A stretch of 64,000 nucleotides of DNA from Heteronotia binoei (lineage: Eukaryota), in contig NC_083237.1 of the NCBI RefSeq assembly GCF_032191835.1, forward strand, positions 66,464,001 through 66,528,000. Reading direction: 5' to 3'. The notes below the pieces were generated by a model that was not told the origin of the DNA, did not search any database, and saw nothing but the letters and a program-made list of their open reading frames with translations. Shown here in pieces: positions 31,427 through 64,000 of the stretch. Numbering within the stretch: position 1 is the first letter of the stretch; the number at the start of each line of letters is the position of its first letter. Both the position numbers and the translations under genes were made by a program.

Positions 31427-31728
31427 TTCTATCCCTATTAACGAATAAAAGTTATTCTTAATCCTGTTACCCCAATAATGTAAGAACTGCATTTGGGTTC
31501 AGTCTGTCAATAAAAGGCTGGGGTAGAGACCACCCTGGTTGAACTGCACAACACCATACAACTGTGGAAAACAGCATTTAAAACCTTGACTTTCACAGTG
31601 CCCACTAAAAATTCTAAAAATCCTTAAAATTCTAAAAGAGCTGACAGCCAAAGCCTCCCTGCTGCTCAGGGAAGAGAAACATTTTTACCAAAGCTCACCC
31701 AGGAGTGAATAGCGTTCCTGGCCCTTAC

Positions 31729-31891
31729 CTAAAACCTCCAAAAGCATCTCAGTGTAAGCTAAAGGGGTCGGAACATTGATCTGGAAATGCAGAGCCTTCA
31801 GAATAGCCAGTTCTGATTCTAGCAAGTCCTTGGCAGTATAGGAGAAGCCCATAGACTGAAGGAACTTCAGGACCACAGCATTGCTGACTAT
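31729..31891 (-). CDS. CNTD1: CNTD1 coding exon 4 (IVSNAVVLKFLQSMG...MLLEVL/G)
   Basis: 163 nt; CAG acceptor, GTAAGG donor. Confidence 0.94.
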
Positions 31892-41943: not shown

Positions 41944-43285
41944 TTTTATTTATTTATTTAATGGACTTATATCCCGCCCTTCTCACCGAAGTGTCTCAGG
42001 GCGGCTTACAACATAATAATTCATATAATTCAATTTAAAACATTTACAAGTACAGTTAAAACCATAATCAATAAAACAAGATAAAACAAAATCAGCGGTC
42101 TATAAAAGCATTTTGTTCCATCCAAAGATGTTCTCATTATCAGTTAGGTGTTGTAGGCCTGCCGGAAGAGGGCTGTCTTACAGGCCCTGCGGAACTGCCC
42201 TAGGTCCCGCAGGGCCCGCACCTCCTCCGGCAGCTGGTTCCACCAATAAGGTCCCGCTATTGAGAAGGCCCGATCCCTAGTGGATTTTAGACGGGCCTCC
42301 TTTGGCCCGGGGACTACCAACAGGTTTTGTGAACCCGAGCGCAGTACTCTCTGGGGAACGTGTGGGGAGAGACGGTCCCTAAGGTAGGCAGGTCCTAGGC
42401 CATATAGGGCTTTAAAGGTAATGACCAACACCTTGTACTGGACTCGGAATATTACTGGCAGCCAGTGCAGATCCCGGAGCCCCGGCCGAATGTGCTCCCG
42501 TCTTGGGAGCCCTAGTAGCAGCCGGGCAGCAGCCTTCTGCACTAACTGCAGCTTCCGGGTCCGGCACAAGGGTAGCCCCATGTAGAGGGCATTACAGTAG
42601 TCCAACCTCGAGGTGACCGTAGCATGGATCACTGTTGCTAGGTCGTCGCATTCCAGGAAGGGGGCCAGCTGCCTCGCCCGCCTAAGGTGAAAAAAAGCGG
42701 ACTTGGCAGTGGCTGCTATCTGAGCCTCCATCGTCAGAGAAGGCTCCAATAGCACCCCCAGGCTCTTGACCCTGCCCGACGCTGTCAGCGGCGCGCCGTC
42801 AAAAACTGGCAGGGGGATTTCCCTTCCCGGGGCGCAGCGACCCAAGCAAAGGACCTCTGTCTTCGCCGGATTCAGCTTCAGTCCGCTCAGCCTAAGCCAC
42901 CTAGCCACTGCCTGTAACGCCCGGTCCAGATTTTCTGGGGCGCAGGCGGGCCGGCCGTCCATAAGCAGATAGAGCTGGGTGTCATCAGCATATTGATGAC
43001 AACCCAGCCCATACCCTCGGGCAATCTGGGCAAGGGAGCGCATATAGATGTTGAATAACATCAGGGAAAGTACCGCCCCTTGAGGCACCCCACAATCAAG
43101 CGTGTGTCTCTGGGACAGTTCCTCCCCAATCGCCACCCTTTGTCCCCGACCGTCAAGGAAAGAGGAAAGCCATTGCAAGGCCAGCCCCTGAATCCCTGCG
43201 TCGGCAAGGCGGCACGCCAGGAGCCGATGGTCGACCGTATCGAACGCTGCCGATAGGTCTAACAGCATCAGCACTGCCGAGCCGC
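41944..43285 (-). mobile_element. 5'-truncated L2 LINE with uninterrupted 376-codon RT/C-terminal ORF (42144-43274)
   Basis: LLDLSAAFDTVDH, GVPQGAVLS, QYADDTQLY and SRLDYCN motifs typical of L2-clade RT; (AAAT)n tail; TTTAT duplicated at both ends (41939-41943, 43286-43290). Confidence 0.93.
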
Positions 43286-47830: not shown

Positions 47831-48564
47831 AGGTGTCAGGCCTGACAATGGCTGCCAGAATAGTTTGTTCCCAACTTGGGAAGACTTTGGTTATGTCTGA
47901 TTAAGAAATGGCACACGGAGGACTTGCAACTAGCAGGAACTAATAACCTGATAGGTATCACGGTTGAAATTGTAGCCTTCAGCTTAACTGGAAAACAGTG
48001 GGCTTAATGTATATTTATTGGAACAAATATGAGGACTGGAAGAACCTCATATTTTGATATGTCAAAAGTATTAAATACTTTTATGTATTTATTATTTTCT
48101 TTCCATAAACATGTTTTTAGATAAACCACTCCCTGTTGGCGCGCCTTCATTTTGAGCAATTGTGGCTGAGGCAGCTGCATTTTAGCGTGCGACTGAAAAC
48201 ACTGCAGGGGCACCAGAAGGAGACCTGCAGGAGTCATCACAGTAGGAGGCTGCCAGCCTCAAGCCTCTCACAGGGCTCTGCAACTGGGCCCAGCAGCCAA
48301 TCATCACTTTCCCCAGCAAGGCTGTGTGCCTAGTCCCAGCTTCGCTTGCAAATGCTTCCCAGCTGACTGTATGGTGTGTGCGTGAACTCCCTATCTGGTT
48401 TAGGTCATCCTTGTGGGGACTGAACAAGTTTTGGAAAGCCACAGCTGTAAAGGATACCTGTTGTTCAGCATTCTCTCCCTAGAAAGCCTGATGATTTCAC
48501 AAGATCAGGGTGATTTATGTGCATATAATTTGGTCAGATTTTATAAGAAAACCTAATGAAGGCA

Positions 48565-48645
48565 GTAGAACACGGCACTTGATCCCGAAAGATTCTACAA
48601 ACCCTAATGATGTTACCAGCCGTGAAAGCCTGAAATCTTTGATAT
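48565..48645 (+). mobile_element. Penelope-like family 1 extreme 3' tail fragment
   Basis: gtagaacacggcacttga...aaccctaatgatgttaccagccgtgaaagcctgaaatct, matching the other copies. Confidence 0.7.
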
Positions 48646-49435
48646 CTCCCTTTAGCTCTCTTAAAGAAAATCCAGCATGTAGCTTTTCCTTAAGTTTGAA
48701 AGTCCCCAGTTTTAATTGGAAGGGAAACAGCAGCCAGTTATGCAAAGCTGATCAATGGTAGTGTTGAAAATCATCAGCGGGTCATACTTACCCACCCCCA
48801 AAAGGCCTCCAGGTACCTTCTGCTTTGGGGAATGGTCAGGGTAGGAGGGAGTGGGGGGGGGGAGAGGGACAGTTTTCGAGAGCCTCCAGTACGTTTACAG
48901 GAGCAAGAGCACAAAGAAGCTGTGCTCTGAGCTCTTGAGGCTGGATCATTTTGGGCACTTCCATTCGCTGTTGAAACAGCATGAGATTCTGGAAAGTAGA
49001 GCTGGCCTTGTGTCATGGACATCCTGCTTAGAATGACTCTGCCTAGCTCCTTGCTCAGGAGGGATAAGGTCCTCCACTGCCCACTAACCACAGCATCTAC
49101 GTGGGTTGCTTACATGGTGCTAGAGTCAAAATGAGCCTTCTTGCAAAGGGTAGATGGAATCCATAAGTGGCACAACTTGTCTCTGCTTGATCAGCCTCCT
49201 CGGGGCACAATGCCACCACCTTTCCTCCCAGGCCCAGGCCTGTCAGAAGAGGTTCCCTCTCTAGCTTGCCAGCAGAGGCAGACTTGGCCTCTTGCCACAG
49301 GCTCAGGTACGATAAGCCGAAGAACACTCTCCAGCGGGGAGTAAGCCCCACTGGACAAAACGGGGCCTCCTCCTGAGTAGATGCGTTTAGGCTTGCTCCC
49401 ACAGCCACCCAGTGACCCCAGCAGTCATGTCTCAC

Positions 49436-49536: not shown

Positions 49537-50089
49537 CTGCAGGGGAGTCAAAGCAGAGGGTCACCAGCCAAAATGCACAAGGCAGCTGACCTCACTCGAG
49601 GACCTCTGCTGTTAACTAAATGCAGCATTTCTAGATGTCACATTTCCAGATATCCGTCACACAATGTTTTGAAAGCAGCTACTGAAGACCCCGTAAAAAG
49701 TCTGCCATGAAAACATCTTGATGCGACATCACCCCAGAGTTGGAAGCGACTGGTGCCTGCACACCAACCTACTCATGATGTACGCAGAGGACAGAACGCT
49801 TCCATTATCGGCACCCAATACGGGCCTTGAGCCAGTAAGAATTTTTACTTGCTCTGATCTGCACTGAAGTTATAGAAAGGCTATTTTTTTTTTGATTAAT
49901 CAATACCTTTAAGATTATCAATATATTTAACATAGCAAGTATTGTGTTTTCTTAAATAATGTCCCACATACGATCAGTCTTTGATACATATACAGATCTA
50001 TTCTATTGCTATATCTTTCTGAAATATTCTTAGAACGTATTGTCTGCCTTTTGTGATTACAGTTTGATTATGGTAACTATATCAAGATA

Positions 50090-50512
50090 AGATTTCAGGT
50101 TTTCACGGCTGGTAACATCATTTGGGACAACCAGCACATTCCACAGAACAATCAGCACAGTCAACAACCATCTTCCTTATCTTCACACCCCTTCCAACCC
50201 TCCCAGCAATTAACACAGAACAATGGTCAAATTCAACAGCCAGTTTCCTTATTACTACCCTTCCAGGAAGCCCCACGAAACAATGGGCACATCCACAAAC
50301 CTATTGCCCTTTCACCACACCCCCTCCAGCCTAGAAATAGCAGCTCTCCAGCAGCCCTGGCCTCACTCAATGCACAGCAGCCAAGAAGGTCAGAATGCCT
50401 GCTCCGGCTGCAACGCCACTGAGGATGTTCTCCGCAGCTGAGAACAAAACGTCTGGAAGAAAAACTTTCTCCAGTAGAACACGGCACTCGAGTCTGAAAG
50501 ATTCTACAAACC
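50090..50512 (+). mobile_element. Penelope-like element, family 1, with inverted tail segment at its 5' end
   Basis: 13-bp TSD CTATATCAAGATA at 50077-50089 and 50513-50525; 50090-50121 is the reverse complement of the family tail seen at about 48605-48640. Confidence 0.82.
50416..50456 (+). ncRNA. Minimal hammerhead ribozyme motif, core-mutated (GAAA to AAAA)
   Basis: CCA-CTGAGGA-T-GTTCTC-loop-GAGAAC-AAAA-CGTC-TGG. Confidence 0.65.
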
Positions 50513-50628
50513 CTATATCAAGATATATCAATATTCCAAATAAATATGAGATTAGTTTAAATTTTCGATATTTGATAGCTAAAGCTAATGTGAATGTTAA
50601 ACAACTTCTATGCCTTAGTGACGAGTTT

Positions 50629-50803: not shown

Positions 50804-51295
50804 ACTAGTTTATATCATATATAAAGATTATTAAATATCTGTTGATTGAGAGGAAAAATATTTTTTGAATATTATAAATATGTTCTATGCATGTATTTTA
50901 AATACTTTTATGTCCACTGTATTGCTGATCATCCTGTTATGTATATGTTAAGTCTTTTTATCAAATTCTCCTTTCCCTGCCCCTATTTTATTCTGGGTCT
51001 TGGGCCACATCTTGACTCTCCAAGGCTTGCATGTGATCTCACAAACGGTTATTAGGAAGAGTGAGGCCAGCGTGAGGAAGCGAGAGGTCCCAGCCACCTG
51101 CACAACCCACACATGCCGAACACTTTTCCCAAGGCATGGATGTATCCAGAATGCACAGAGGGAGAGGGGGGGATTTCTGTGCCTCAAAAGCTTGTTTTCT
51201 GGAGCTGTGTAAGGCTGATCACTTTCCCAGCTTTTCTAACATTTGTAATTACAACTTCAGCCCAATGAGTCTGGCTTTCAAAGTGGCATGCCTTC

Positions 51296-51450
51296 ACTCA
51301 ACGCACAGCAGCCAAGAAGGTCAGAGCGCCTGCTCCGGCTGCAACGCCACTGAGGATGTTCTCCGCAGCCGAGAACGAAACGTCTGGAAGGAAAACTTTC
51401 TCCAGTAGAACACGGCACTTGAGCCCGAAAGATTCTACAAACCCTAATGA
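51296..51450 (+). mobile_element. Short Penelope-like family 1 insertion, consisting mostly of the ribozyme module
   Basis: 11-bp TSD GGCATGCCTTC at 51285-51295 and 51451-51461. Confidence 0.85.
51347..51387 (+). ncRNA. Minimal type I hammerhead ribozyme motif, intact core
   Basis: CCA-CTGAGGA-T-GTTCTC-cgcagcc-GAGAAC-GAAA-CGTC-TGG; predicted cleavage after C51384. Confidence 0.8.
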
Positions 51451-51530
51451 GGCATGCCTTCCGTCACACACCAACTGCAGGATGCAGCTTTCACTTGGCA
51501 TAGGATGGGGGGGGTATGGAAGCGGCTCAC

Positions 51531-51736
51531 CTTGGGGCTGCCCCATGTCCAGACGCTGCAGACTACTGCGCCGTGAGAAGGGGCTGAAGCTGCTCTTGGA
51601 GAAACGGCGCTGGCGGCTGGAGAGCATGGCAGCAGGGGACATGATGCCAGGAGGCGGCACCTTGCCCAGGCGGGCATAGAGTTCCTCAATCTCTTGCTTC
51701 TGCTGGGCCTGGAGCATCTCTACTTCAGACAGGTGC
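51531..51736 (-). CDS. WNK4: WNK4 exon 17 ([25 protein letters not shown]...[16 protein letters not shown])
   Basis: 206 nt after an 88-nt intron; CAG acceptor, GTGAGC donor. Confidence 0.95.
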
Positions 51737-51824
51737 CTGAGCAGAAGTGAGAGAAGGAAGAAAGCAGACATCAGTCGGGGTGGTCACGGAGCAGTGGGGA
51801 AGGGGGTCCTCGCCCTCCACTCAC

Positions 51825-53495: not shown

Positions 53496-54001
53496 CTCCT
53501 TTCCAGGCTGGCTTACCAGGCAGTTGTCAGGACTCTCCAAGGCTGAGGTTCTGGAGGGCAGCGGAGATGCCTGTGACCCAAAGAGCTTGTTGACTAGCTG
53601 GGCTGGTTTAGTGGGAGGGGGCACCTCTGGGTAGATGAAATGGGCAGTGGCCTGGCTGGGTGGGCAAAGCCCCGGGGACTGTGAGACAGGGGAGGTGTAG
53701 ACAGGGCCCGTCTGGGCAGGGGCTCCAGAAACAGCTGGGAGAAGCGACTGGGCCACGCTCATTGCAGCTAGGGAGAAGACATTGGCAAGAGAGAACAGGG
53801 ATGGGGAGGGGGAAGGAGAGGAGGTCCAGAGGGGGATAAGGGGGGGCTGCCCAACAGATGGGACAGTAGGTGATGGGAGGGACAAGGGAGGAAGGAGGGC
53901 GCTTGGTGGGGAGGCTGGTTGGGACACTGGGAGCAGGTAGCAAGGAATCGTTGGCATCCTGGGGTAAGAGGACCAGGTCTGTGCAGCTATGTCAGGGACA
54001 C
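53496..54001 (-). CDS. WNK4: WNK4 exon 14 (Pro/Ser-rich; LFSLANVFSLAAMSVAQSLL)
   Basis: 506 nt open frame; strong ttttgcag acceptor, GTATTT donor; motif similar to recalled human [20 protein letters not shown]. Confidence 0.85.
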
Positions 54002-56252
54002 CTGCAAAAAGAAATGCAAAGTCCTAGATGAATGAATGCCCAGCTGGAAAGTGGGCAGGAAGGGAGGCTGAATCTCTCTGGCCCTATGGCAAAATGCATC
54101 CCCTGCCACACAGCTAAATCTGCACCCCAACTATATATTTTGTGTGCTGCAGCAGAATAAAAACTCTGCTACCAAATAATGCATATCCGGCATATTTGTG
54201 TGGAAGTATGTGAATGATCTCATACTAATTAAAATAATACATTCTGCTCCCGGAATTCTCAATTTTTTCAGTAACATGGACTATTTGGTAAAGAAAGAAG
54301 GGTACAGAAGGATGGATCAAGATGGATGGGGAACTACAGAATCCACTGAAATCCTTCCCCAGTGCAGGCTAAGCCACTGTTAACATGACCCAACCATTTG
54401 ATTTCTGAGCTTAATACGCAGTTCTGTGCAGTTATTTCTATCTGTTCATTTCAGTCATCTTAGACTGGAGTAATTCTGCATAGGACCGTTCTGTTCGCCA
54501 GGCTCTATATATTTTCAAAAGTTTCTCCAACCCATGTGGACCAAACAAACAAGTGTAAACCCATATGGACAATTCCCCCCCCCCAACATGAACATTTGAG
54601 GATGTCAGAATCTGTAGATGTGCCAAACACACATCTCCCTGAAACCAGCAGTTTGCAATGTGCCATCAGCTGTCCTGGCCCCTGGATTCGGCAATTACAA
54701 AACATCAAAGTTCCACAGACTAGCAGGAGAGATCAAAGAGAATCCATTTCTAATTCCTGCCCTGCTGGGCCCTTTCTTCTGAATGGGAATTGCTCACTTC
54801 TAACCTTTGGGTGGCAACGAAAGCAGAGGAAACCCCAAGGCCTCCGTGCTTGTTGGGCTGAAGAGCTCATTCTCAGTCAGGGACCCCACCAACGATGCCT
54901 GACCAAGGGGTGAGATGGACTGGCCAGGGCTCGAGCAGCTCAGATCTGAAATAAAGGAAGCATCAAGTCTTGGGATGTAATTTCACAATTTCTTCTTGCA
55001 AATCAGGCATCTTTTCCAGGATTACCAGAACCATTTCTAGATTAAGCACCTCCTGATGTTACGTGGCCCCCTTTCATACACCTGCCTTCTAAGTAGTTTC
55101 TGAAGAAACTGCAGTTCTTTGAATGTGTGATTCAGCTCTAATATGGAATGCTCAATACCCACTAAAACACTGGGGGGAATGCACCCTTCTATCTCATTCT
55201 ATCAACATGACATGACTATTTTTTTTAAAGTAAAAGTCAAAACTATGGCAAACATGCAAAAACAATACATCATAAAATACAACAGCAAGAAGACAAATCT
55301 CATTTAGCCCAAAGGACAATCCCCAGGCATCAGCAACTGGAGTTTGCTTCTGTTCTGATTATACTGTGGCACAAAAGCCACTTCAGCAACTAACATTCAT
55401 AAGCACAAGGACTCACAATAATGGGTTTAAATTATGGATGGAATAGTACCAGTTGGGTATTAGGAAAAGAGTTTTTACAGTGAAGGTTGTTCAACAGTGG
55501 AATCAGTCGCCGAGGGAGGTGGTGAGCTCTCCCTCACTCGCAATCAGCTACACAGGGATGCTCCAGGCCAGGCGTGGGGAACATCTGGCCCATGGGCCGT
55601 TTTCCCTTGGTCTGTCCCACAGGGATTGCAGGGCTAAGCTGCACTGGGACCTCCTGCAGGGCTGAGCAATGCTGCGGCCTCCCCGAGGCCAGTTGGCCAG
55701 CAGGGATTGTGGGGCCCAGTTGCACTACACGGTGGCCTCCCCAAGACCTGGCTGGCTGGCCATGATCACTGCAGGGCGTAGAAGAGTCACTGTGGCAGTT
55801 CAGGTAAGTTTCCCCCTTATTTCTTTATTTCCCTTTCTTTCTATTCCCCACATTTCTTTGTTTCCCTTTATTTCCATTTCTTCCCCGCATTTCTTTATTT
55901 CCCTTTCTTTACTGTCATTAGGTACCAGCAATAAATAAGCTTGTACTGAGCTTCTCTTGAAGAAGAGCTAAGGGAACAATCTCTAATTATACTTTTAATC
56001 CAAGTATTTCGAAGATGGCAAACCCATAGTTCATAATTCAGCTGAACTGAATGTATCTCCTTGGTAGTATGTGTTTGTATGTGTTCTATTGTTACGTATA
56101 CACACATTTTAAATGCTGTTTTAATGTTTAAATGTTTTAATGCATGATGTCTGCTACCCTGGGGACACTATTTGGGTGGAAAGGCAGCATGTAAGTGTTT
56201 TAAATAAGAAATCAGTTTTAATGGGACAAACTACTGGATTGTTTTAATATGA

Positions 56253-56708
56253 TTAGGGTTTGTACAATCTTTCGGGCTCAAGTGCCGTGTTCTACTGGAG
56301 AAAGTTTTTCTTCCAGACGTTTCGTTCTCAGCTGCAGAGAACATCATCAGTGGCGTTGCAGCCGGAGCAGGCGCTCTGACCTTGACTGCTGTGCATTGAG
56401 TGAGGCCAGGGCTGCTGGAGAGCTGCTGTTTCTAGGCTGGAGGGGGTGTGGTGAGAGGGCAATTGGTTTGTGGATGTGCCCATTGTTTGGTGGGGCTTCC
56501 TGGAAGGGTAGTGATAAGGAAACTGGCTGTTGAATGTGGCCATTGTTCTGTGTTAATTGCTGGGAGGGTTGGAAGGGGTGTGAAGATAAGGAAGATGGTT
56601 GTTGACTGTGCTGATTGTTCTGTGGAATTTGCTGGTTGTTCTGAGACTTTCTGCAATTTATAGTCTGTAGGGTGTGTTGCAGAGCTGGGTACCAAGATTG
56701 GTGGATTT
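56253..56708 (-). mobile_element. Penelope-like element, family 1, sense to WNK4
   Basis: Inverted copy of 50122-50512; 12-bp flanking duplication GTTTTAATATGA at 56241-56252 and 56709-56720; ORF remnant ...QIHQSWYPAL resembles PLE C-termini. Confidence 0.82.
56313..56353 (-). ncRNA. Minimal type I hammerhead ribozyme motif with canonical CUGAUGA core, sense to WNK4 pre-mRNA
   Basis: CCA-CTGATGA-T-GTTCTC-tgcagct-GAGAAC-GAAA-CGTC-TGG; predicted cleavage between 56316 and 56315. Confidence 0.82.
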
Positions 56709-57288
56709 GTTTTAATATGAGTGGAGAAAATGCCAGGTGCAGTTTTGTCCTCAGTGTGGAGAAACCATCAGGAACTTTATTCCAAGATGCAATAAACAAC
56801 CCAGCAGGAATAAAATAGACATAAAGGAATATGTATTTTTTCATTCTCCCTCCTGCCTGTTTTCTTTGGCAAGTTTTATTTCTGTTCTTTCAAACTATTT
56901 TTACATTAGCTACCATTTTATGTCATTTACTGGCAACTCGTACAAAATAAGAAATGAGTTTTAATGGCACAAACTTCTGGATTGTATTAATATGAGTGGA
57001 GAAAATGACAGCTGCAGTTCTGTCCCAAGTGTGGAGAAACCATTTTTTTTTGTAGCAGGAACTCTTTTGTATATTAGGCTACATCAGAGAGTGTAGCCTA
57101 ATATGCAAAGGAGTTCCTGCCACAAAAAAAGCCCTGGAAGCGACAAAACTGAACCAGAGTGGTCATAAAATACAGGGAGATCCCTACTGTAAAACTATCA
57201 TCATTCCATTTCCAGATAAGCAGCTGCATGCAGTCTTGGAAAAGAACATATGAATGTTGGGATAGGGTCAGGTTGTGGGGCTACATAC

Positions 57289-58035: not shown

Positions 58036-58203
58036 ATCACCCAGGAGAGGAGAGGAGAGGCCCTGCATCTCTCGGCTGCCCACAGCCTCCTGGGCTTTGC
58101 TCTTCCCATCTTTGTGCAGGAGGGTCTCCACATGTTGGACGATGTCATGGATTCGTCGGATGAATCCATCCTGCTCTGATTTCAGGATAAACTCCTTGGC
58201 AAC
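58036..58203 (-). CDS. WNK4: WNK4 exon 12 (VAKEFILKSEQDGFIRRIHDIVQHVETLLHKDG...LLGD)
   Basis: 168 nt; CAG acceptor, GTGAGT donor. Confidence 0.9.
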
Positions 58204-58257
58204 CTGGGGGTGACAGGAATGGAGTGTACATATGTTGGGGGGAAGAGTCAAAACAGA

Positions 58258-58483
58258 ACTGGGGTCCACTTCTGCCGCAGCCCCTCACCTCTTCCCCAAC
58301 CCTCACAGGCTTACCATGACAGCGGCAATCTCCTCGGCACTGTCCCCATCCAGGTCAAACTTAAAGGTGACTGGGGTCCACTTCTGCCGCAGCCCCTCAC
58401 CTCTTCCCCAACCCTCACAGGCTTACCATGACAGCGGCAATCTCCTCGGCACTGTCCCCATCCAGGTCAAACTTAAAGGTGAC
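58258..58483. repeat. Perfect 112-bp tandem duplication spanning WNK4 exon 11 3' half and splice donor
   Basis: 58258-58369 is identical to 58370-58481; 2-bp AC microhomology at the ends. Confidence 0.95.
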
Positions 58484-58543
58484 CATCTTGCTGTTGTAAG
58501 TTTGGAGTTGGCACTCAACCACACGATCGTTTTGGTTTGAGAA
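58427..58543 (-). CDS. WNK4: WNK4 exon 11 ([39 protein letters not shown])
   Basis: 117 nt; CAG acceptor, GTAAGC donor. Its 3' half and donor are duplicated immediately downstream. Confidence 0.93.
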
Positions 58544-59366
58544 CTGCACACAGGAAAGAGTTGAAATTAGGGTGGCAAGTGGACAGGTGACTCAACTTGG
58601 CTGAATCAGCAGCAAAAGATAAGTAAAGACATCAGGATTTGGGACTCCTGAAGGGCATACAGCCACAAAGATGGAACTCTCTTCCATTAATCCAGTGGAT
58701 GAACAGAGAGGACCTTTCATTAAAATATTTATTATTTATTTACTTCATTTATACCTTGCTTTCCCTCCCAATGGAGGCTCAAAGCGGTTTTCATTGTTCT
58801 CTTCTTCATTTTATCCTCCAACAGGTTAGGCTGAGAGAGACCGACTACAAGGCACAAGGGGTCACCCACCAAGGCCTTTCAGGGCAGAGGGGGGATTCGA
58901 ACTTGGATCTCCCAGATCCTAGTCTGATACTCTAACCACTCCACAACACTGAGTCTCCAGAGGTAGCCAATGATTTGTCTTGAAGCCTAAAAATATTATG
59001 GCTCTCCTTTAAAAGCAATTATTACAGAAGTAACAGAACTTGTTTAAAGCATACGTTTATATTCTAAAAGCAGGGTTTTCCACAGAACTAATGAGTCTTG
59101 AACTTGTTTTGTTTTAAAGTCTTCCCTCCACCCCAGTTCAAGCGATATGCTCTAACAGGGAATATTCTATATCCTTAAGCATCGTGCAAAAAAACAATCT
59201 TTGTGACAGCCTTTCCTTTTAACATCAAGAGTTCGTTCAACTTGTCGGCTGCCCAAATCTGAACAGCTGCCTCATGCTTAAATGAAAGTCATTCACCTAA
59301 TTCAAAGAAACCCGACCCTTGGATAGCCCTCGTCTCCTCAGGAGCCCACAGAGATGATTCATATGA

Positions 59367-62641: not shown

Positions 62642-64000
62642 CTGTTGAGAGGGGAGATGGAGTGGAAAGGAGCAGAGCTGCCTCCTTCTCAGTTCACTGA
62701 GTTCCCCACCCCCACCCCCACCCAGCAGCTAGTTGCAGGGCCCTTCAAAGCACGGGCTGTGTTCTTCTCCCTTGGCCAAGACCAGGCTGGTGAATCAGAA
62801 GGTGTGTGGGCTGCCCACTCTGGGCTGGGCTGGGCTGAGGAGGAGAGGAGAGGGGCCTCAGCAGGTCATAAGGCCATATAGGCCACTTTCCAAAGCAGCC
62901 CTTTTCTTCAGAGAAATTAATCTTAATCATCTGGAGATCAACTGTGATAGCAGGAGATCTCCAGGTACCACCTGGAGGTTGGCAGCCTGGCCTACTCTGG
63001 GAACCCAAAGTTGCCAGCAAAACACTTCTGCGCTCACCCTCCCCCCACCCCATTATTAGTATAATCTACCTATTATTTATTTCCTAATCTTATTTCCTGT
63101 TTGCAACCACAGCTGCTTAAAGACAACAGGTAAGGAGCCACACTCTGTGGCATTTTAAGAGGAAGGGCTGGATCAGCCAGGCTGGCAACCGAACCACTCC
63201 TTTGGCCTGGGCACCAGCAGCTGAGACGACACAGCACTGTGCCTCCATTCACATTCAAAGCTCCATCACAAAGAAGACCTGGGGAAAGGGCGTTGCTCTC
63301 TCCCCCCTTCGATTGACCCTCACAAAAGCTCCGTGAGGTGTCTTGGGGGGAGAGGGGAGTACATATCTGGCCCAAGGTCACTCAGCAAGCTTTCATGGCA
63401 GGGTGGAAATTTGAACCAGAGTCTCCCACATCCATCACTCTAACTTTTCCCTTCAACCATCGAAGCTCGCAGGTATCTAATATCAAGCAGCAGAAAAATT
63501 CCAGATATTCTAGCTGGAGTCGAGATAAAAGGACTGGTACATATAGAACTACGTCCAATGTAATTTTCAGCTCATTGTCTTTAAGCAAGAAGAGAACAGT
63601 TTGCAGAGAGTAGGGAGCAGGCCCACAGCTACAGCAGGGCCATTTGGGGGCCATGCCCCCTCGGGTGTGAGCCGTACCCCACCACCCCTGCCCCACGCCT
63701 TGCCCAAAAGACCAGCTTGTGCAGGAGCACCACAGGCCACATGATTGCGGCGCATGACTCCCCACTGCAGAGAGGCCGGCCAACCTACCTGCCTGCCTGA
63801 TCTGCCCACGCCTCAGACACCTACTTGGCTCACCTGCCTGCTGAAGAGCCTCGCATTTGTTCACAAGGCTGGAGCGTGCTTTCTTTTCTTTCTTAAAGGA
63901 TGTTTGTGTGTGGAGAGGGCTTCAGCTGAAGTTCCCCACTCCCTTGTCCCAGCACCCAAAAGGGTTGCTTAACAGGAGCGTAACAGAGGGTTCCTGCACT

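Follow-up and report, generated by a model that had tools for sequence, protein, structure and literature searches.

Minimal hammerhead motif in a WNK4 intron of the gecko Heteronotia binoei, very probably a passenger of a truncated Poseidon-type Penelope-like insertion

The window analyzed here, a 64,000-nt stretch of Heteronotia binoei contig NC_083237.1 (assembly GCF_032191835.1, positions 66,464,001 to 66,528,000 of the forward strand), contains WNK4 coding sequence on its minus strand and, between two coding regions of that gene, a 454-bp insertion bearing a minimal hammerhead ribozyme motif; all positions below are those of the window. WNK4 was identified by searching one exon, followed by local tblastn of the returned proteins. 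Exon 51484-51738 (minus strand), compared with protein representatives, gave its best full-length matches at the C-terminal end of 1016-1261-aa proteins with about 70-75% identity, all named WNK4 by their source, and weaker matches to 2000-2800-aa proteins named WNK1. In local tblastn, WNK4 matches on the minus strand began at 62671 with about aa 489 and reached the C-terminal end of the protein at 49370, the 5' exons falling outside the window; no WNK4 similarity was detected between 57883 and 53861. Because the gene runs on the minus strand and this interval lacks WNK4 similarity, the insertion is intronic and its motif is sense to WNK4, and both searches agreed in this respect with an earlier sequence-only reading of the same DNA. 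The locus is organized as follows.

58108-58564, minus strand: closest WNK4 coding exons on the upstream side, CCT-like 2 domain (guinea-pig WNK4, about aa 694-771)
56945-57043, unstranded: intact neighbouring copy of an older repeat, from repeat search and alignment
56707-56720, unstranded: right copy of the target-site duplication, 14 bp, identical to the left copy
56253-56706, minus strand: 5'-truncated copy of a Penelope-like element of Poseidon type, 454 bp, made up of the pLTR/3' region, the hammerhead and 92 nt from the start of the element ORF
56453-56635, unstranded: three degenerate repeats of about 60-72 bp each, within the non-coding part of the insertion
56342-56344, minus strand: presumed start codon of the element ORF (A9-U-G10.1, read as ATG)
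56239-56252, unstranded: left copy of the target-site duplication, TTGTTTTAATATGA
53700-53798, minus strand: closest WNK4 coding match on the downstream side, at about aa 916-948

The CCT-like 2 exon region is overlapped by a perfect 112-bp tandem duplication (58258-58481). Far downstream of WNK4, an isolated tblastn match of 60.5 bits at 31718-31876 (minus strand) was obtained with one WNK4-sized protein, and may represent a neighbouring gene fused in that protein's gene model.

The insertion interrupted an older repeat, whose halves at 56202-56252 and 56707-56768 were recovered by repeat search and alignment as split at 56252/56707, with TTGTTTTAATATGA on either side. The flanking duplication described by the sequence-only reading is therefore real and perfect, its length being 14 bp rather than the 12 bp given there. 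The hammerhead sits 60 nt from the 3' end of the insertion, and the element ORF frame is open for 30 codons from the ATG at 56344 to the insertion end, with the cut site 26 nt past the ATG. Beside the intact copy of the older repeat lies a near-perfect hairpin (57041-57134; 39-nt arms, 92% complementary, 8-nt loop), which matched Rfam miRNA precursors below threshold on either strand (mir-2778 scored 42.6 bits, the gathering score being 86) and is probably a foldback or MITE-like repeat.

The motif is a complete minimal type-I hammerhead read on the minus strand from 56353 to 56313 as CCA / CUGAUGA / U / GUUCUC / UGCAGCU / GAGAAC / GAA / ACGU / C / UGG, with the following parts, all on the minus strand.

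56313-56353: minimal type-I hammerhead motif, from sequence, pattern and descriptor matches
56353-56351 and 56315-56313: helix I, 3 bp, CCA/UGG
56350-56344: hammerhead core C3-A9, CUGAUGA
56343: extra unpaired U between A9 and G10.1
56342-56337 and 56329-56324: helix II, 6 bp, GUUCUC/GAGAAC, closed by G10.1-C11.1
56336-56330: loop 2, 7 nt, UGCAGCU
56323-56321: G12-A13-A14
56320-56317: ACGU palindrome, A15.1-C15.2-G16.2-U16.1
56316: C17
56315-56316: predicted scissile bond 3' of C17, from hammerhead numbering

All conserved core positions are present (C3 U4 G5 A6 N7 G8 A9, G12 A13 A14, A15.1/U16.1 and H17). Helix I is open, as in type I, the next positions (G/A) being unpaired. There is no helix III hairpin; the palindromic 15.2-16.2 positions (A-CG-U) permit a helix III shared between two molecules in a dimer. 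A loose hammerhead pattern matched once in comparison with 0.12 matches expected by chance. The full descriptor of the minimal hammerhead, demanding the core, G10.1-C11.1, a helix II of at least 4 bp, GAAA, palindromic 15.2/16.2, U-H and a helix I of at least 3 bp, matched twice in the window (at 56350 on the minus strand and at 51350 on the plus strand) and never in 300 dinucleotide-preserving shuffles. These matches and the sequence itself bore out the minus-strand core with its 3-bp stem I and 6-bp stem II that had been read from the letters, and the cleavage predicted there between 56316 and 56315 agrees with hammerhead numbering. The outcome of the proposed hammerhead search was nevertheless divided: the descriptor recovered the motif, whereas the Rfam 15 covariance models Hammerhead_1, Hammerhead_3, Hammerhead_II, HH9 and HH10 gave zero matches in 5 kb or in 201 nt even at E<=10, presumably because hammerhead models expect the helix III hairpin that the minimal form lacks. 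Another hammerhead geometry, with a long "helix II" extending to 56295, was rejected, since only 4 weak pairs would support it.

Several features mark the insertion as the terminal fragment of a Penelope-like element (PLE) of the Poseidon type. Minimal hammerheads of metazoan PLEs are characterized by a long helix II, a short helix I, an unpaired nucleotide separating position 9 from 10.1, a G10.1-C11.1 pair and a palindromic 15.2-16.2; they have been reported in reptiles, reside in the terminal repeat and are scattered mainly as single motifs in truncated copies (PMC4209133). Every one of these traits is shared by the gecko motif, and comparison with this class (PMC4209133; Lunse et al. 2017, as cited in PMC6765202) revealed no substantial difference, the gecko family having its own sequence version with N7 as U in this copy and G in two related ones. 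Variable 5' truncation, a target-site duplication and an AT-rich target, all typical of PLEs, were also found.

The closest parallel is Poseidon of Anolis carolinensis. The ORF of the Anolis element PAc begins at stem II, with the cut site 26 bp after the start codon; Poseidon copies terminate where reverse transcription starts, a region in the ORF's 5' portion, with an optional "tail" of 30-40 bp; and both DNA strands are cleaved and extended, two reverse-transcription start sites bounding the tail (PMC11167929). Across its unit junction the Poseidon_Ac consensus (supplement to PMC11167929), which was compared by eye and over short stretches, reads CCU / CUGAGGA / U / 6-bp helix II with a 7-nt loop / GAAACGUC / AGG. 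The gecko copy and Poseidon_Ac have in common a 3-bp helix I, a 6-bp helix II, a 7-nt loop 2, the AUG at A9-U-G10.1 with the cut 26 nt further on, a motif straddling the unit junction, and homology over roughly the first 90 nt of the ORF, where, by eye, ETSG and SPKD recur as peptide motifs and one 11-mer, AGCCCGAAAGA, is identical. Gecko and Anolis copies likewise share an end at the first reverse-transcription start region, an optional tail of about 32 nt and an AT-rich target. The gecko copies stop at CCCTA(A), at the point where Poseidon_Ac has ...AACCCTG near +88. The two differ in 6 extra nt between the gecko motif and the conserved AGCCCGAAAGA and in a much longer non-coding region upstream of the motif in the gecko, whose family is known here from truncated copies. 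The helix II sequences also differ, in a compensatory manner: by eye, 3 helix II pairs and 1 helix I pair were changed on both sides and are still paired. The Penelope-like origin proposed by the sequence-only reading is thus corroborated by the motif traits, the Poseidon_Ac geometry, the homologous 3' end and the PLE tail present among related copies.

Local blastn with 56253-56706 uncovered three further copies of the family in the window, all on the plus strand and consequently antisense to WNK4.

51295-51450, plus strand: sibling with intact core (CUGAGGA; hammerhead at 51347-51387)
51285-51294 and 51451-51460: 10-bp duplication flanking this sibling
50090-50515, plus strand: sibling with the core inactivated by G12A
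50080-50089 and 50516-50525: 10-bp duplication flanking this sibling
48563-48639, plus strand: short sibling without the hammerhead, with a 32-nt PLE tail extension beyond CCCTAA

The aligned portions were 94.6% identical at 50127-50515 and 93.5% at 51294-51447, with a short end piece at 48563-48607; the insertion is thus 93-95% identical to its siblings. The 5' starts of the copies differ and their 3' end is common to all, three copies terminating at CCCTA(A), +92 from the AUG. Since the copies at 51 and 50 kb each have their own 10-bp duplication, they represent independent insertions. The 50-kb copy also carries a 37-nt inverted tail piece (50090-50126), joined head-to-head at its 5' end within the single 10-bp duplication; this piece is the reverse complement of the tail of the 48.5-kb copy, making the whole a small fold-back insertion.

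Instead of a truncated autonomous element, could the insertion be a non-autonomous derivative, retrozyme- or SINE-like, that Penelope elements mobilise? When the larger ORFs were scanned with Pfam, the only reverse transcriptase (RT) detected was of LINE type, and the window showed no RT/GIY-YIG ORF of the insertion's family; upstream of the motif, at least 350 nt are non-coding and contain internal repeats; and a 2026 preprint traces animal retrozymes to the PLE pLTR (bioRxiv 10.64898/2026.07.22.740005). Animal non-LTR retrozymes are built from units repeated in tandem, with a canonical type-I hammerhead in every unit, and they yield circRNAs (PMC7229834; bioRxiv 10.64898/2026.07.22.740005). 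The gecko insertion resembles them in carrying a hammerhead within sequence akin to the PLE terminal region; unlike them, it has one motif, no unit-length tandem repeat and the remnant of an ORF start. The match of its 3' 92 nt to the start of the Poseidon ORF, and 5' truncation points that differ among copies as suits truncated long elements, argue further against a derivative, which we consider unlikely. The only RT ORF of the window (42144-43274, minus strand; 376 aa, RVT_1, E 1.4e-23) is unlike the Penelope insertion and, judged from its C-terminal region, looks like an L2/CR1-type LINE.

Hammerheads do reside in introns of amniote genes. Those of RECK, CTCL and DTNB (Rfam HH9/HH10; PMC6155905) are likewise type-I, sense within an intron of a protein-coding gene and probably derived from retroelements. 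They are canonical, with loop-loop tertiary contacts and a helix III, and are kept at orthologous sites of birds and mammals (De la Pena & Garcia-Robles 2010, as reported in PMC6155905). The WNK4 motif differs from these domesticated hammerheads in lacking canonical helices with tertiary loop contacts: it is minimal, matches no Rfam model, belongs to a young dispersed repeat and has diverged neutrally.

Divergence was assessed against the two siblings that cover the motif. In both, the core is CUGAGGA, the free position N7 being G; the 51-kb sibling is otherwise intact, and the 50-kb sibling has lost an essential base to G12A, a CpG transition. The WNK4 copy differs from each sibling at 3 of 41 motif positions, compared with 5.2-6.2% outside the motif, and one of its motif differences is a CpG-to-TpG change in loop 2. 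The motif is thus decaying neutrally, at the pace of its flanks, and under such decay an intact core does not speak for host selection. In the Poseidon_Ac comparison, compensatory changes have accumulated in helices I and II with the core still enclosing the start codon, a pattern that supports selection for the ribozyme fold acting on the element and not on the host gene.

The prospects for cleavage were judged from nearest-neighbour energies, which leave tertiary contacts and proteins out of account. For the isolated 41-mer, ViennaRNA predicted a minimum free energy structure of -11.8 kcal/mol in which core GAUG pairs with the cleavage-site CGUC, whereas the hammerhead-competent structure, at -7.8 kcal/mol, made up about 0.14% of the monomer ensemble (about 1% for the sibling with G7). 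The intermolecular ACGU/ACGU helix III alone would contribute about -1.7 to -3.1 kcal/mol, corresponding to a Kd of about 6-60 mM, which on this model is far above any nascent-RNA concentration. A stable homodimer was predicted (-32.4 kcal/mol), but as an extended duplex with the helix II strands swapped through the CUGCAG palindrome and not as an active dimer.

An incidental, non-adaptive cleavage of WNK4 pre-mRNA might still occur if an active Penelope protein or abundant sense transcripts helped the motif, so that a small fraction of the pre-mRNA was cut. The intact core of the WNK4 copy is compatible with such an event, and for cleavage the Anolis Poseidon hammerhead requires addition of the protein encoded by the element (PMC11167929). 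The region bound by the Anolis protein, however, lies in the ORF's first 172 nt, of which the WNK4 copy retains only 92 nt, and even at the hammerhead site of the Anolis element itself RNA-seq reads neither begin nor end (PMC11167929). Incidental cutting is accordingly improbable. Still less can be said for a broader version, to which we would give very little credence: occasional activation of the motif in vivo by Penelope protein or family transcripts that would cut some WNK4 pre-mRNA and tie WNK4 output to transposon activity, and separately a long intramolecular dsRNA formed around the last WNK4 exons with the inverted siblings 5-6 kb downstream.

The sequence-only reading had gone further, suggesting that two nascent WNK4 RNAs, or one WNK4 RNA and another transcript of the family, dimerise via ACGU and cleave the intron during transcription, which would give a concentration-dependent brake on WNK4; as a rival explanation this means a brake kept by selection. 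The core is indeed intact and sense to WNK4, and the statement that minimal PLE hammerheads work as dimers holds as a view of the literature, in which they are "thought to" do so (PMC4209133, PMC6765202). Published experiments nevertheless detected no cleavage by a single PLE motif and poor cleavage by tandem dimers, even in cis (PMC4209133). The millimolar Kd of helix III, the inactive stem-II-swapped duplex as the predicted stable dimer and the small competent monomer fraction all argue against the brake, as do motif conservation that does not exceed that of the flanks and the history of the insertion, nested with its perfect duplication in an older repeat and closely similar to its siblings. 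Only one sense copy of the motif-bearing element was found in the portion of WNK4 within the window, where the gene is seen up to position 64000; its upstream remainder could carry another. The brake is therefore unsupported and extremely improbable. Finally, a chance resemblance to the hammerhead consensus, for which the silence of the Rfam hammerhead families might speak, is already refuted by the family context, given the two descriptor matches against none in the shuffles and the same placement of the motif across the repeat family and in Anolis Poseidon_Ac, and its probability is vanishingly small.

The best overall explanation, which we hold with high confidence, is a truncated copy of a Poseidon-type PLE whose hammerhead is a passenger in a WNK4 intron. 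The 3' end of such an element would have been inserted by target-primed reverse transcription at an AT-rich site in the older repeat within the intron, and an early stop of reverse transcription would have left the 454-bp 5'-truncated copy with its 14-bp target duplication. Copies of the element would each carry their own minimal hammerhead straddling the ORF start codon, with motif integrity presumably maintained at the level of active master elements, and the WNK4 copy would be a passenger whose core positions have so far escaped mutation. Transcribed within the WNK4 intron, the motif RNA would most likely adopt an extended, inactive hairpin or, at a later stage, pair as dsRNA with the inverted siblings, and would leave with the excised intron without measurable self-cleavage. 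What the analysis establishes is the anatomy of the locus, its gene and strand, its kinship with the family, the neutral divergence and the predicted energetics; that the motif neither cleaves in vivo nor serves a host function is what we infer. The locus is of a kind already known, a truncated Poseidon-type PLE with a standard minimal hammerhead; it has little consequence for WNK4 biology, and its value lies in classification. Minimal intronic hammerheads of this gecko genome are best read as the passenger ends of Poseidon-type Penelope elements unless conservation or RNA ends indicate otherwise.

The inverted arrangement of the copies is a separate matter. The insertion at 56253-56706 (minus strand) and the siblings at 50090-50515 and 51295-51450 (both plus strand) bracket the WNK4 exons at about 51.5-53.9 kb. 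Pairing of the motif region with these antisense siblings, 5-6 kb downstream in the same pre-mRNA, was predicted at about -169 kcal/mol per 86 nt compared with -22.5 kcal/mol for its own fold, and inverted sibling pairs of this type could, on these modelled energies, favour dsRNA editing or back-splicing.
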